A DNA stretch of 61,907 bases, counting the filler, from Trichosphaerium sp. ATCC 40318 (lineage: Eukaryota; Protista; Tubulinea), in NCBI GenBank assembly GCA_038496445.1. It is 4 parts of 4 records of this genome, joined end to end, with 100 filler letters (N's around TTAATTAATTAA, not from the genome) between each part and the next. Parts side by side here need not be neighbours in the genome. Positions count along the whole stretch, not along the records: positions 53,677 to 61,907 come from JALMLS010000158.1; 3 more parts are not named here. One strand, given 5' to 3'. Below are positions 53,677 to 61,907 of the stretch, in pieces (positions within the stretch are counted from its first letter, which is position 1; each line of letters opens with the position of its first letter). Under the pieces are notes generated by a model. The model did not search any database. It saw only the letters and a list, made by a program, of their open reading frames with translations, and was not told where the DNA came from. Made by a program: the position numbers and the translations under genes.

Positions 53677-55155
53677 AAAAAGTGACTTCCAGCATCACCA
53701 AGTCAATCAAGGCAAAAGCATGATTCCTACAGAGTTCCAAACCTTCATTCTCTTTCTTTTCAGACAGTTGATAAAATATGCTGATTTAATTGAAAGAACC
53801 AAGCTCAAAGCCACTCACTACATTGACAGAGTTATTCTACACAGCAATCAAATCAAAGATGCAGCATTTGAATACCAGAGATATCTCATCACTCTTTGTG
53901 TTATGCTTTCTGGTGGACAAAGAAGACAAGTTGTTGCCAATATAAAAGTGGCTGATTTAAAATTCAGACCAGGTGATAAATCTCTTGAATTTGCTCTCAG
54001 TGTTGAAAAGAAGCAAAGGAGAAACAACTCCATGGCTCTCTCTGTACGTTCAACACGTTTCGTCTTCGCACACGTGTTTCGCGTGTTCGGTTTTGGACCG
54101 CGAGCTCGCGGTCGCATTCGAACACGTTAAAACTCTGTTCATTTTTTTGTATTTTTCACTCGTTCTGACTTGCTTTTGTTTGTAGATGGATAACAAGCTG
54201 TACACTTATGTTGCTTTGTGGTACAACAACTATAGAAAGCTGTTGGTTGATGTGAATGCCACCCATCCTGTTCTTCAATTTTGGGTAAACAAAATAGGCA
54301 CTCCAATGGACAACAATTCAATAAGTAAGATGGTCAAACATGTTGGAAAGAAATTCAATCCTTTTGTCACCAACCTCTCTTGCTCCACTGTAAAGCACAT
54401 TACTTTGACCAAACTCTTTGCTGGAGAGTATGCTAGCCATTGCCCTGCTGTCAACTTTCAAAGCTTGGGTATGGAGATAACCAGACTTCTCAACACTTCC
54501 TTGAAGACTGCCAACAAATACTACAATGACTTTGACTCTCAAATACAAGATGAGTATGGGTTTTTTGGTTTTTTTTTTCTTTTTAGAGAACTCACCCTTT
54601 TTTTTTTTTTTGTAGAGCCACATTAACAATGATCAATAAAGAAGCTTTGGAACCTATTGCTGATGCCATAGAAATTCCTGAACACTTGGAAGAGCTCATT
54701 GACAAAACCAAACTTCCAGCCATAGTGAGAGACACACTGTCCAGGCCTGTTCGAGTAGATCCAGACCTACGAAATGCTGTGTCTGAAAAAGATGTCTCTT
54801 TTTATGAACCTGAAGGGGCCAAAACTGTGCTTTACCATCAAAGTACTTACTTTTACCACTATTGATACAATAGATAGATTGCTTTTTATTTTTTACTGAG
54901 TTTTTTTTTTTTTTTGTAGATGCACATAAGTTATCCAAAATAATGGCTGTCTTTAAAAATGCATAAGGAGAATTGACATGCAAGGTACAATTAGCAGACA
55001 AATCCATTACTGTTTGGCCTTTTAAAAAGGTGGCCAAACACAACATGGCTGATTTGCAACAAGCCATGTTGAAAGAGCTTCAAGAGAGAGATGACAACTA
55101 TGAGCTTGTCAAAGCAGAGCTAAAAAAAGCCAAAAACCAGGAATTAGAGGCGTGA
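53677..55155 (+). CDS. Tyrosine recombinase (phage-integrase fold), intron-containing; 5' end in gap, one in-frame stop near 54964
   Basis: Box I LSGGQRRQVVANIKVADL; catalytic-K region LSVEKKQR; FWVNKIGTPMDNNSISKMVK; box II STVKHITLT...LLNTSLKTANKYY; in-frame intron 54044-54185. Confidence 0.8.
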
Positions 55156-55333
55156 TCATGAAAATCTCCACTTTTTTTTTTCAAAATCTCCACTTTTTTA
55201 TTTTGTCCCAATAGTTGTTTTACACCTTAATATACTCCCCAAAGCCACTACAGCATTGTTTCAAAGTGTAACACAATACTACTAATGTCATAGACCTTCA
55301 GACAACTTAATAAATAAGAAAAAAATGGTATAT

Positions 55334-57512
55334 TTATTGAGTTGCTCCAAAGCGTTGTACAGGCACTGAAACACGCTTTGTATGCTGTGTTTGTAAGCGC
55401 TGTTTTAATACAACCTCTCCATCAGGTAGCACTTGTTTAACTTCATGGCTTAAACCAGCTGTAAGTCCAAGAGCTTTTTTTTGTTTTTTGATGATAATTC
55501 TTTTCTTTTTAGTACCAGAAAGAAGGGGTTTTTTGTGTCGTACAATGATCACAGTCTTTCTCTTTTTTTTAGGTGGTACCATTGAAGGTTTTAGGCTTTT
55601 GCGCTTGCTATTTGCTTTCTTCTTTTTTTCTTCCTTTCTTTCTTTTTCTTCCCGTTTTTTTCTTTTTTTGTCAATTTTGTGTTGCATACTCAAGACCAGA
55701 GGAGTATTGTTTACTTCTACAAATAAAACATTAACATTATTTAAAGAACGTTGTAAGAGTTGGTAGTACTTTTTTGTTCATCTTTTTTTAAAGCAGCTTG
55801 TTTCCTTTTTTCTGTAGTAGAATGAGGGGTACCACTGCCTTTAACACCTTCTATAACACGGAGTGCTTCGTTACAACTGGCTACAGTGTATTTGACAAGA
55901 GTGTCAACTACGTGATCAGTGATACTTCCTTTGGCACCATATAATTTAAGCACCTGTTGAACATCGCTGTTGTTGCCTTCACTAATATTATTGGTTCGAT
56001 TATTGAGATGTTCTGGGTTGTTACAACAAAACTGAGCCCATGTCTTAGGAGGAAACCTATAAGAATGTAAGCAACATATATAGAACCAATAAAACGTGTA
56101 CTTGCTGACATCATTGCTTGGTGCTACATAATTGTCTTCTAAATATTGCATATATTTTTTGATATTACCACCTGCTATTATAGCATCCTGTAAATAACAA
56201 CCATTAGTACTACAACCACTCAAAATACAACGTACCTCTTTGAATTTATTCCAAAGCTTCCAAAACTGCTTTTCCTCCGGACAAGTTGTTAAATCCTTAC
56301 TAAACTGGGTACACCAAGCATATTCGGCCTTGTTCTTTTCTCCACCCAACCCACATTTCATACGGTTCCTTCTATGAGCTTCTGCCACATGAAATAAACA
56401 GTGGTAGACAGGCATATCATCTCCCCAAACTTTGAAAGCAGCTAAGCGTTAAATTAACATTTTTTCAGTCAGTTTTTTTACCTTTTTTCAAATTCACCTC
56501 ACAGTCGGCCATCATCCGTAAAAAGACAGGACCAAAAACTTCATTTAGATGCTCAAAGGCATACACATACTCTGGTAATGTTTTACCTTCTGTTAAAGCC
56601 CATCCGATATTAGTTCCCTTAGATGCAACAGGGCCAACAGCTTTCAACCAATACATCAATGTCTATAAAAAAAATAAGTATTTGCTGCAATTATAAATTG
56701 TGTCTTTTTCTTTACGTGAGATCCAGCATCCGTTGAGTTGTGAACAGCATCCACAAACAATGTTTGTTTATTCAACTGTTCTATTAAAGGTACAGCTAAA
56801 GGCTCAATGTATGATATGACAGTGTGTTTGGCCATATTTATATACACTGCTTCTCGGTACTTTAGTTTGATGTTTGCGAACACCTGTTGGCGTAAAGTAA
56901 GCCTTAAATAGCATATAAAAAAGATTATGATGCAAAAGGTACCTCAGGGTTTTTCCTTCCTTCTGCGCGTTGCAGACGCACTCTATACGTTAGCGCATTG
57001 TTTGTTGGTACTATGGAAGCATTTAAAGGGTTTTTCGCAGCAGATAAAGTATTAATAGCCTAAACAGCAATTAAATACTTTAAAAACACCTTGCTACGCA
57101 CAATCACCCTTTTAGACACTCCTTTTTTATAATCTGTTTGAATTTCGTGTCCAATGGAATATTTCAACTTAAAGTTCTTTACTGGATCTGGAGTGCACCT
57201 GGGAACATGTTCTACACTTTTTAAACAACATTTTCTACAAAGAAACTCACGTTTTGTTAACTTCACCATGCCTATTTTGCCAACTTTTGTTTTGTGAGAG
57301 TGTATGTTTAAGCGTGCTGAACATTCCGAGTGATTGCATTCAAAATAGTATGAAATCTTCTCAGGGTTTTTTTTATGAGGCTTGCTGCCCTTTCGAGTAA
57401 ATTGGTACCCATGTGAGCGTGCAGAGCTTGTGTAAACAATTGCACGCTCATTTGGCACCCAATCTATTAAATTAAGGTCTCCCACGCCTGGGTCTATTAC
57501 AACAGCTGCCAT
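55334..57512 (-). CDS. Mutator-like (MULE) DDE transposase, multi-exon
   Basis: N-terminal WRKY/FLYWCH-like finger YFECNHSECSARL; LFVDAVH, MMADCE, YHCLFHV (CxxH), RTNNISEGNN; basic C-terminal tail. Confidence 0.88.
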
Positions 57513-57574
57513 GCCATGATTGCACTCGTTTTTACTGGTTACTTTTTTTGGCGCTAAGTTTGCCTTCCCTTATC

Positions 57575-58040
57575 TAATACCATGTCACCTTTAGTTATTT
57601 CGTGTTACTCTTAGTAAGGTACACTGTGTTACTCTTAGTTTATTCCGTGTTACCTTTAGTTTATTCCACGTTACTTAGTAAGGTACACCATGTCACCCTT
57701 AGTTTATCCCGTGTTACTCTCAGGTCATACCTTTATGTTACTCTTAGTTTATTCCGTGTTACCCTTAGTTTATTCCATGTTACTTAGTAAGGTACACTGT
57801 GTTACTCTTAGTTTATTCCATGTTACCCTTAGTTTATTCCGTGTTACTCTCAATTTATTCCGTGTTACTCTTAGGTCATACCATGTCACCTTTAGTTATT
57901 CCGTGTTACTCTTAGTAAGTACACTGTGTTACTCTTAGTTTATTCCGTGTTATTTAGTAAGGTACACCATGTCACCCTTAATTTATTCCGTGTTACTCTT
58001 AGATCATACCATGTCACCCTTAGGTCATTCTGTGTCAGTT
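57575..58040. repeat. Array of ~21-24-bp tandem units, probable subterminal repeats of the MULE element
   Basis: TTAGTTTATTCCGTGTTACTC and variants repeated immediately upstream of the transposase start. Confidence 0.85.
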
Positions 58041-58215
58041 ACATCATACCATTTCTTGTAGAGCAGGTATTCTGTGACTTTTAGTAATGTCCATGTCCTT
58101 AAGGTATACCTTAGGTGTTATAAACTCGATTACCAAAATGAGTGTTTTAATGCTAGAAGAGTAGTTGGAGCTCACTAAGAACTTGAACTGAGTTTGAATG
58201 TGACAACTACTGGAG

Positions 58216-59142
58216 CAGGGCTGAAACTAAATAAGGCTTTTTTTGCAAAAGCCTTTTTTTTGCCACCAAATACAGCCTTATTTTTCACCAAATTGCCTTG
58301 TTTTTGCCAAAAAAAATGAGCAAATATGAGGCATTGCCTTGTAATTTTGGGCTTTGAAGCCTCATATTTGGGCCAAATAGCAAGCAACTGGTTCACTAAT
58401 TAGCCTTAAAATAGCCTGCATTGTTGGTCCAATAATGCCTCAATTTTTGTGCAACAATAAGGCATTTTTGCCCTCAATTTTGGGCATAACCCAGCACCAT
58501 ATACTCATAAAACAAGGCTTTATATAGGCATACAATAGTGATTCATTTATTAAAGTACAGTACACAAAACACAAAAAACTGCAATGTCCTCCATGTGAAT
58601 AAAAACCTTTAGCTTAAAAAAAAAATTAACAAATTATTGGGAAAATTTTCATGGACTGGAAAAATGGTTTAATGTACCTGTACTACTGTTGTAGGTGGAT
58701 TTGGGTGCTGCGGTTTGAATGGCGGTGGTTTCGTTAGAATCCATAAAATACTAAGCGCGTGGTGACGTCGTCTATATAAAATGTCAGTAGTAAATGAAAA
58801 AAAATGTTTAGGAAGTGATGGTGTGGTGGAAACTTACCTTAAACCAATGTATCCTTAATGTACAATGTGTACACAACCAATGCCTAATTGGTGCCTGTAA
58901 ATTTAAGGCTGGCAATGCATAAAAAAACTAGGGCAGGCATTGCCTAAAAAAAACAAGGCATTGCAACAATTAAGGCATTGCCCAACAAAGCTTTATTTCA
59001 ATGCCTGATTTTTGCCTTTTCTGCCATTGCCTTTGCAAAATCAGGCATTGCCATTTTTGCATGCCTGATTTTTGCCATCAATGCCTGATTTTAAAAAAAT
59101 GCCTTCATATTTAAGGCAAAGCCTTGTTTAGTTTCAGCCCTG
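58216..59142. mobile_element. MITE A copy 2
   Basis: Near-identical to 45607-46533; 2-bp TSD AG/AG. Confidence 0.95.
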
Positions 59143-59615
59143 AGTTGCTACATATTCTTGACCCAGTCAATACCTCGATTAACTTTATTACACTCATTGT
59201 TGGTGTTGTAATGTTAAAAGAGCACATCAAGCATGATGCTATGTTATGAAGGTTGTAGACTATGTGATGAAAGCAACACACATCATTTCTACACTCCAAA
59301 CGAGCGTTCTAATGCTAGAAAAGAACATGCGGTTTGGTACACAAGTAGTTGTTGCCCACTCAGGGCTTCAACTCATGTTGTATTGAACTGTTTGCCACTC
59401 AGGGCTACAAGCTCAATTTTCAACATGTTTAATGGACAATGACTTGATCGACATCTCTTTATCAATCTGTCATTTCATTTGACAGAGATAAGATGAAGGA
59501 GGAGTACAGGTGTCCATGTTGTACAATAAACATTGATCCATTCAGGACAATATTGTATTGTGACAATGTCTGTGTTCTAATGATACAAAGCACTTGAGAG
59601 TATTTTGTGTCACTA

Positions 59616-60644
59616 CAGTGGTAAAATGAAAACGGGATTTTGGATATAAATCCCACTAAATTCCTTTGTTTTAGGGATTTTTAAGGTAATTTGTGAAGAA
59701 TTCTTATTTTTATTTTTTTTTATGACAGGATTTTTGATAGAATTACCATAATATTCCCTTAAATATGGAATTTTCAGAATTATTGTACAAAATCCACCAA
59801 ATAATGTACTAATTTAGTTAGGGTTAGGGTTAGGGCTAGGGTTGAGGTTTATGAAAGTACAAATTAAGTTAGGGTTAGGGTTTAGTTTTATATTTGCAAA
59901 AAACCATCAACTCCTTAGGTACATAGGTTTTTCTAGCAAACAATATCCACATGCTATTATTAAAGGTGAAAAAACCAATGGTACAGGTTAAAGTGCGTTA
60001 ATCCAAAAAGTAACGGAGAACGCGTTTTAGGTGGTTTGGAAAATCACTTAAACATAAATATCTCTTACTTATCTGTTTTAGGATGATTAAAGCATTGCAA
60101 CAGCCTTATTACACCATTAAAGAATGTATTTAAAGCATTAACTCCAAATACGTTGTTTTTAAAGCTTATTTCCACTTAATTTATCAAAAAACCCTATGCG
60201 TTCTTAATTTAGCATTTACAAATGCATTAATTATTGTTCAGGCTCTCAAAACCAAATGCGATCAAATTACTTCTTTCGTTTATGAAGACACGATGTATTT
60301 AACTTGTACGTATTATTTAGGACGTTTGTATTTTGTAATGATCAATAAATAAAATGACTTTGCATTAAATCTGAACCAAAGTATCGAATAATATGTGTAA
60401 TTTATAAAGTATTTTTTATTGAAATCTACAAAAAATACATTAAGAAATGCTATAAAGAATACATAGAGAATTCTATATAAAATACATACGCAATTCCAAA
60501 AATAATACTCTAAGAATTCTATGAGTAATACTTACGGAATTTCATATAAATTCAATGGGAATTAAGGAAGAGTTTTTCCGTCTACTTTTCCCATAGGAAA
60601 ACAGGGTGGATTACTTAAAAATTCCCATTTCTATTTTACTACTG
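59616..60644. mobile_element. MITE C (CAGT termini, TA flanks) carrying TTAGGG repeats
   Basis: Imperfect TIRs CAGTGGTAAAATGAAAACGGGATTT / AATTCCCATTTCTATTTTACTACTG; TA on both sides. Confidence 0.8.
59818..59885 (+). repeat. Interstitial telomere-like TTAGGG repeats
   Basis: TTAGGGTTAGGGTTAGGGCTAGGG...TTAGGGTTAGGG. Confidence 0.85.
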
Positions 60645-61907
60645 TAACATCACACACTATTGAAGTGGTTGTGTTGCTGTATCTTTGAGAGTACAGTCTC
60701 ATAGCCCAAGAACTCGATTAACATTTCTACGCTCTGTACAAAAACGTGCGGTATAATGATAGAAGAGAACTCTTCATTCTGGGAGTGAACACAATATTAA
60801 AGCTGCAATTACCACACAACAACCAACTAGCATTGTCATCAGTGGATATACTAAGAGATGAGTTTAACTCGTCCTTTTCTATCACATAAGAAAGCTAGAG
60901 TAGCCATACTCGTGGTTTTTGTGTGTGTAAGCGCAACTAATGCTCATGTCTACTTTCCAGTTGGAAGTAAGAGGCTGGCATAGCAAAGAGGAATTACAGC
61001 CATGTGCTCAAAAACGCTCAAAAACTCAATAGAACCACATGTTTGGGCCAAAAGTGTCTTTTCTTGCGATAGAAGAATACATGCTACCCCTTTTCGTTAT
61101 GCCTTGATAAACAGTGTTCTGTAGTTACAAAACATTATCATCACCTCAGACGAAAGGTTGTGTTGGAGCCAGAAGTTGATTACCACTGCCTATGTTGCTA
61201 TGTTTATTACACATGTTTCATAGGGGCTTACGTGGTAGAAGACGACAGCATCCTAGGTCCTCGTGCTTACCGTCACACTTGAGCGCACTCCAGTATTTTG
61301 GGAGTGTTGCTTGGGCGTGATAGTCAGTCACCATAAATGTGCTACACGATGGGCGGAACCCATGGTCACCGTGCACTCCCTGTGGGCTTGTTCATCGGGT
61401 ACAACAAAAGGACTTTCAGACGTCACGCTTAGCTGCATTTTCTTCAAATGCATTTGCATTCGACTGATTCTTTTTTGTTTTCTCGATTGTGCCAAGGAAA
61501 AGAGATGCGATTTCTGCAGGCGCATTTCACTCAAATTTTTTCCTTGTTCTTCCGCGCAGGTAAATCGCCTAGCGTTTATGGGGGAATCTGATTTGGTTTA
61601 TGCCTCATAGTCTCTTCTCCATTTACGCCTCCATTAGGCTACACGGTTGTAAGACTGCGAATTTATTGAGTTTTCACGCAACACACTACACTCAACACAT
61701 TCTTATAACTCTGAATAGGCAGGTATTGTACGTTACAATAATTTTTTATTTTTATTTTTTTTTCTACAGTACAGCCGGCGACAAAAATCACGTGAAGGTA
61801 CAACAAGACTGTTTTTTTTTTTTGTAATATTGGGCTTTATTAATAAATTACAGGTTAAAAAACCATTGAGAGTATTTAAACCATATATAAAGGGAAGACA
61901 GCCCGTT

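Follow-up and report, generated by a model that had tools for sequence, protein, structure and literature searches.

Positions 53,677 to 61,907 of the window (the whole 61,907-nucleotide stretch of Trichosphaerium sp. ATCC 40318, assembly GCA_038496445.1, made of four joined parts) come from record JALMLS010000158.1 and contain two convergent genes, a candidate transposase gene of a Mutator-like element (MULE) and a spliced gene that probably encodes a tyrosine-recombinase (YR) fold. The reading that we tentatively prefer is a foldback-type element, similar to the MULE Muta1 of Aedes aegypti, in which a captured YR-fold gene would ride as a passenger or DNA-binding accessory. An earlier note on this DNA had proposed a Mutator-like transposon carrying its own recombinase, possibly a resolvase. 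This proposal is partly confirmed: the anatomy is largely real, the linkage of the two genes is unproven, and the resolvase role is unlikely.

The genomic sequence analysed was 53677-61907, the left edge of which cuts into the YR-like gene. Its GC content is approximately 36%, and its spliceosomal introns are mostly 30-77 nt long. Searches for homologues, library matches and structures were made with single exons, and exons were joined only for reading frames, residue numbering and codon counts. The word-indexed protein search covered proteins of 0.55-1.75 times the query length, a range outside which full-length relatives would fall.

The minus-strand gene runs from 57512 to 55334 and is well supported as a MULE transposase gene. 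It consists of eight exons, which on joining give a frame open for 616 codons; all introns are GT-AG and 30-59 nt long.

57090-57512, minus strand: MULE exon 1, zinc finger of WRKY/FLYWCH-like type (E=0.011 for Pfam WRKY, not reaching the cut-off)
56943-57059, minus strand: MULE exon 2
56716-56883, minus strand: MULE exon 3, first Asp D225 (56751)
56482-56662, minus strand: MULE exon 4, second Asp D289 (56506)
56236-56441, minus strand: MULE exon 5, CxxH motif with C311 (56400) and H314 (56391)
56102-56187, minus strand: MULE exon 6
55770-56056, minus strand: MULE exon 7, W400 (56040) and catalytic E420 (55980)
55334-55716, minus strand: MULE exon 8, basic C-terminus, stop TAA 55336-55334

By motif comparison rather than profile match, D225, D289, C311/H314, W400 and E420 parallel D214, D283, H307, W401 and E419 of Muta1, all of which are essential (PMC5225508). 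The spacings are 64 (D-D), 25 (D-H), 20 (W-E) and 131 (D-E) residues, compared to 69, 24, 18 and 136 in Muta1. The match of exon 1 to WRKY is weak but in register, both in Pfam, where it is below the gathering score, and in the PDB library (WRKY1, E=0.66). No match to a MULE or Transposase_mut domain profile was observed in the exon-by-exon Pfam search, probably because the domain is split over exons of 56-68 aa. The spliced transposase gene of the earlier note was recovered, and it is divergent and intact. A strong hairpin with 26-nt arms (57398-57466, z=-5.1) lies inside exon 1 and overlaps the start of the WRKY-like domain.

The right side of the transposase gene carries the subterminal array that had been noted at 57.6-58.0 kb. 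It starts 67 bp upstream of the transposase ATG, falls into three subtypes of units, and has a Tandem Repeats Finder score of 283-386.

57579-58035: subterminal tandem array, 21-bp period, approximately 21 units
58036-58122: degenerate continuation of the array, 14-bp palindrome 58101-58114, probable right end at about 58118-58122

Degenerate array cores extend to approximately 58120, and the probable position of the right end follows from a flank repeat that starts at 58123. By analogy, we take the array to be a foldback-type end of the Muta1 kind. In Muta1 such repeats assist binding and excision (PMC5499845), and subterminal tandem repeats are common in MULEs with long terminal inverted repeats (TIRs), being present in 10/12 mosquito families (PMC5225508). 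In metagenomes the array unit had two isolated chance matches, and in viral contigs it had none. We also asked whether the array could be a Helitron end, and rejected this because the nearest CTAG belongs to the flank repeat and is some 40 bp away from the palindrome.

Muta1 itself is a type-2 foldback element (PMC5225508, PMC5499845). It shares with the element considered here an N-terminal finger of the FLYWCH/WRKY type, putative in the present case, the D-D-H-W-E spacing, the subterminal tandem repeats and the palindrome near the end. However, Muta1 consists of a single gene, without a recombinase, between symmetric TIRs of 145 bp with 12-bp repeats, whereas here we observe a 21-bp unit, seven introns and a single visible end.

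The plus-strand gene has four visible exons, its 5' part being cut at the edge of the piece, and introns at 54044-54185, 54554-54615 and 54843-54919.

53678-54043, plus strand: YR-like exon 1 (5' cut), candidate codons for Arg-I at 53921 and for Lys at 54008-54013
54044-54185, plus strand: YR intron 1, 142 nt, GC 0.45, hairpin 54076-54131
54186-54553, plus strand: YR-like exon 2, Ser in place of His (54384), Lys in place of Arg-II (54393), Asn in place of His/Trp (54492), Tyr-Tyr 54519-54524
54616-54842, plus strand: YR-like exon 3, C-terminal extension, no family match
54920-55155, plus strand: YR-like exon 4, in-frame TAA 54964-54966, final TGA 55153-55155

The likely YR fold is assigned from the order and spacing of motifs, and not from a database match. 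A chain of gapless blocks places Arg-I at residue 82 of exon 1 (p=0.017), and in exon 2 it places the patch, the Arg-II position at Lys70 and the tyrosine at 113 (p=0.004). Altogether, five YR blocks are ordered and spaced correctly across the two exons (combined p ~0.0007); as the blocks and gap ranges were picked with knowledge of the sequence, these p-values give moderate support only. The MULE exons, taken as a control, were negative in the same test. R82 is followed 29-30 residues on by K111/K112, while the chain itself put R115 in the Lys block. Box II reads S-T-V-K instead of H-x-x-R, with Ser for His and Lys for Arg-II; the His/Trp site is Asn103, and Tyr112/113 are candidate nucleophiles at the expected nine-residue spacing. 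The motifs STVKH and LLNTS and the atypical box II are thus present as first described.

Alignment to phage recombinases by hhalign was in register on box I for exon 1 (E=0.04-0.06, with 3/200 shuffles equally good), and fell on the patch before box II for exon 2, without significance. HMMER scores of the YR exons against 14 phage recombinases were no better than those of shuffles. Searched exon by exon, the gene had no true match in Pfam, PHROGs, NCBIfam, PDB or 1.84 billion representatives; the sole HMMER match of exon 2 among the latter, a fibronectin-repeat protein, was rejected as an artefact of summed repeats. DUF3504, GCR1_C and other Crypton-family domains had no Pfam match on the visible exons, exon-wise searching being of reduced sensitivity. 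A scan with Cre returned only near-identical Cre. AlphaFold models of single exons, each made from a single sequence, had predicted template-modelling scores of 0.21 and 0.32 and no Foldseek match, and were uninformative on the fold. Red-algal and amoebal YR-like proteins presumably have similar GGQR and NTS motifs; two motif scans of viral contigs gave chance matches only.

Although three catalytic positions are non-canonical, the protein may in principle be catalytic, as bacterial type IB topoisomerases have Asn at the last catalytic site and lysine can replace the second arginine. The latter is a natural variant, and R292K is tolerated in Cre (PMC4499138).

The frame contains an in-frame TAA at 54964-54966 that had been overlooked. 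It most probably represents a premature stop, since the genetic code is standard and the 62 codons past it retain coding-type GC periodicity (0.53/0.24/0.45). A ciliate-type code was rejected: all 21 Gln codons of the 616-codon MULE frame are CAA/CAG, and there are no internal TAA or TAG. Alternative splicing around the TAA would need acceptors without a pyrimidine tract and was judged unlikely. Probably, then, this copy is damaged past the catalytic domain, or its sequence has an error there. Of the YR gene proposed in the earlier note, the splicing and the motifs stand. Exon 4 (54920-55152) may resemble a chromo-shadow domain; the part past the stop has no Pfam match. The GC-rich hairpin of intron 1 (54076-54131, z=-3.8) has a perfect 18-bp palindrome and may be a very small insertion or a stem that shortens the intron.

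The final stops of the two genes, TGA 55153-55155 and TAA 55336-55334, are 178 bp apart. The tail-to-tail arrangement about 180 bp apart noted before therefore holds for the final stops, and presumes read-through of TAA 54964; otherwise the distance is 367 bp.

55156-55333, no strand: gap between the stops, 178 bp, 22-bp tandem duplication 55161-55204, array-like word 55262-55274

The duplication lies just past the final stop of the YR gene. AATAAA is found at 55309 (plus strand) and 55203 (minus strand), each gene having one on the far side of the gap, which weakly favours one element. The gap contains no intact TIR, array copy or target-site duplication (TSD).

That both genes form one element we consider somewhat short of an even chance, with a wide margin. 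Within this, our tentative preference remains the foldback-type MULE with a captured YR gene. The layout would be as in mudrA/mudrB, with the left end beyond the edge of the piece. By analogy with Muta1, the WRKY-like domain would bind the array, the DDE enzyme would cut the ends by double-strand breaks with hairpins on the flanks, and insertion would produce an 8-9 bp duplication. The YR gene may have been acquired from a neighbouring gene or from an element of the Crypton kind, as suggested by MarCry; its product would be a passenger or a DNA-binding accessory dispensable for cut-and-paste, and the present copy would be damaged by the premature stop. The inverted array-like words in the gap would represent a decayed original left end, bypassed when the YR gene was taken up. 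This reading is favoured by the open transposase frame with its Muta1-like spacing, by the fact that nothing in the gap approaches the 97% likeness of the Muta1 ends, by the frequency of antisense second reading frames in MULEs, and by the origin of DDE-YR composites in ciliates and Fusarium. Further, the 3.8 kb to the right contain no recognised intact gene, so that close packing of genes is not typical of the region.

A number of observations weigh against common mobility. Only one partial copy is available, as the piece ends inside the YR-like gene, which is broken while the MULE gene is intact. Compared to the MULE gene, the YR gene has longer introns (62-142 vs 30-59 nt, p=0.017) and a higher GC content at third codon positions (0.40 vs 0.32, p=0.015), which suggests separate histories of the two genes but is not decisive. 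The surroundings are dense in transposable elements, with two more TIR elements within 2.5 kb, and in such surroundings chance adjacency of the genes is plausible. No relatives or further copies of either gene were found in the viral, metagenome and genome contigs scanned. The same was true of tblastn searches of phages and plasmids, of exact look-ups, and of the word-indexed search with the 230-aa MULE frame, YR exon 1 and MULE exon 7; PDB sequences, PHROGs, NCBIfam and PADLOC also gave no match, and neither did Rfam. Finally, the array word, inverted, is matched by the gap at 55262-55274 in 11/13 positions, and inverted alignments of the gap to the array have p=0.003-0.05 under six scoring schemes, with none in the direct orientation.

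This last similarity is faint. Nulls preserving local composition give p of 0.004-0.19 for the inverted orientation; over all scorings and nulls, local-alignment p-values are 0.002-0.19 inverted vs 0.26-0.8 direct. Outside the array, the 7-nt core GTGTTAC occurs only in the word at 55262-55274; the word pattern was loosened to take this word in, so that the pattern result is not an independent test. A hidden Markov model of the unit (nhmmer) and a position weight matrix of the array units did not single it out. Still, the absence of an end between the genes, claimed before, is not secure: it holds for intact copies and not for this inverted word. The step from there to one element is also weaker than the earlier note stated, because insertion of a Crypton-type element, lacking TIRs, into the 3' end of a MULE would give an identical picture.

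Two independent elements are thus a serious alternative, which we rate slightly below the preferred reading. Either a stand-alone MULE with asymmetric ends would have its left end in the gap at about 55213-55300, or a Crypton-like YR would have inserted into the 3' region of this MULE copy; the YR would then serve its own element by circle excision and reintegration. A left end in the gap is conceivable because one terminal motif and one repeat per end suffice for Muta1, the ends of which are 97% alike (PMC5499845). The restriction of the gap similarity to the inverted orientation, the different intron style and third-position GC content, and the two nearby TIR elements all fit this alternative. 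So do the features of Cryptons, which lack TIRs, carry terminal direct repeats of just 4-6 bp, and occur in regions of nested transposable elements (PMC3212892, PMC13465315). However, no TSD with matching ends was found for a putative left end inside the gap, and the similarity weakens when gaps are penalised strictly (p up to 0.19). An intact transposase is ill-suited to an end only about 60% alike, and an insertion would have to hit an interval of less than 180 bp. Equally, the faint likeness could mark the decayed ancestral left end, the YR gene having been acquired by the element afterwards; the coexistence of an intact transposase with a poor end would then be accounted for.

Tn4430 and other members of the Tn3 family with TnpI are bacterial pairs of a DDE transposase and a YR, transposing replicatively via cointegrates and having a defined resolution site. 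It is unlikely that the genes considered here form one element of this kind, in which the MULE would transpose replicatively or form circles and the YR would be a working partner that resolves its cointegrates or its circular or multimeric intermediates, as in Tn4430 and as proposed for Tec. Equally improbable is its extension to a MULE family stably encoding an active divergent YR (Ser/Lys/Asn for His/Arg/His), that is, a eukaryotic Mutator working like Tn4430. The DDE-YR pairing is common to both; replicative transposition and a defined resolution site are shown for Tn4430 but not here. Candidates for Arg-I, Lys and Tyr are present, the lysine at Arg-II is of the tolerated kind (PMC4499138), MuDR is able to switch to a replicative mode, both genes contain unexplained hairpins, and a role of the Tec YR in resolving intermediates has been proposed (PMC3212892). 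On the other hand, the biochemistry of one MULE, Muta1, has been studied, and it is excised through double-strand cuts that form hairpins on the flanks (PMC5499845). As such cut-and-paste chemistry makes no cointegrate, a resolvase would not be needed, and the earlier suggestion of a resolvase is not favoured. Three non-canonical catalytic positions and a premature stop alongside an intact transposase argue in the same direction, and 53677-58220 contains no loxP-like palindrome, having such arms around a 6-8 bp spacer, that could be found. It thus seems likelier that the YR is a passenger or an accessory.

The least probable alternative, that a MULE inserted beside a non-recombinase gene or a non-catalytic host derivative similar to the DUF3504 or Ndc10/Gcr1 genes, would agree with the lack of matches in Pfam, PHROGs, NCBIfam, PDB and the 1.84 billion representatives, with profile scores against phage YRs within those of shuffles, with the existence of domesticated non-catalytic YR genes (PMC3212892), and with long poly-T introns resembling the host-type acceptor at 61742-61767, but is opposed by the five ordered YR blocks and negative MULE exons, and by a nonsense codon unlikely in a conserved host gene.

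In maize MuDR, mudrA and mudrB are arranged convergently. Other MULEs with a transposase and a second open reading frame, often antisense as in MutB and those encoding PMD, include Mutyl (mutB), VANDAL/Hiun and PMD-carrying clades, and no recombinase is reported for any of the 50 groups surveyed, the word being absent from that survey (PMC6446971). MULEs have TIRs at both ends, absent in some families, and an 8-11 bp TSD. Composites of a DDE transposase and a YR are established in ciliates (Tec1/2, Sardine, Thon) and in Fusarium (MarCry), all with transposases of the Tc1/mariner type (PMC3464196, PMC5405496, PMC3212892); thus of the precedents listed before, Tec stands, but the list was too narrow, omitting Sardine, Thon, other Paramecium elements and MarCry-1_FO. 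The ciliate elements, together with other YR-carrying Paramecium elements of the IS630/Tc1/mariner group, have up to four open reading frames and long palindromic TIRs (PMC3464196, PMC5405496). The transposase described here is unlike theirs, with 131 residues between the second Asp and Glu vs about 32-35. MarCry-1_FO of Fusarium oxysporum is likewise a eukaryotic composite moved by its DDE enzyme, but has a mariner transposase, 16-bp TIRs, a TA TSD, a CryptonF YR with GCR1_C, and four copies (PMC3212892), whereas here there are a MULE, a YR without a family match, and one truncated copy. Cryptons share the spliced eukaryotic YR gene and the lack of TIRs (PMC3212892, PMC13465315), but the gene described here has no match to DUF3504, GCR1_C or another Crypton family, and its R-H-R-Y tetrad is altered.

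The pairing of a MULE with a YR would be new if the linkage holds, DDE-YR composites as such being already known. In agreement with the earlier note, no such Mutator architecture was found in the literature searched, most subscription papers and Repbase being outside it. If the two genes move together, this would be the first Mutator element with a tyrosine recombinase in that literature and an independent origin of the DDE-YR pairing outside Tc1/mariner. It would also provide a tractable test of the YR role in elements of the Tec and Sardine type, since yeast assays are available for the mechanism of MULEs (Muta1), and would bear on how MuDR achieves replicative gain. If they are mere neighbours, what is left is of modest interest: an intact but divergent MULE, and a YR-like orphan gene of an unsampled eukaryote.

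Further elements were observed to the right. The first (58216-59142, 927 bp) has 25-bp TIRs that are 96% alike and start with CAGGG, an apparent 2-bp AG duplication, and no coding capacity seen. The second (59616-60644, about 1 kb) has TIRs starting with CAGT and flanked by TA, similar to a Tc1/mariner-like miniature inverted-repeat transposable element; it contains TTAGGG repeats (59817-59882) and a 23-bp tandem repeat (60421-60541). The flank repeat, 40-55 bp long, occurs in four degenerate copies (58123-58161, 59172-59222, 59284-59323 and 60711-60767; pairwise p 0.003-0.013). It has a small internal inverted repeat, ends near CTAG, has no Pfam match, and could be a decayed coding repeat or the end of a small element. 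Two short motifs at 59352-59415 resemble the reversed right end of the 58216-59142 element and are possibly older copies of that end.

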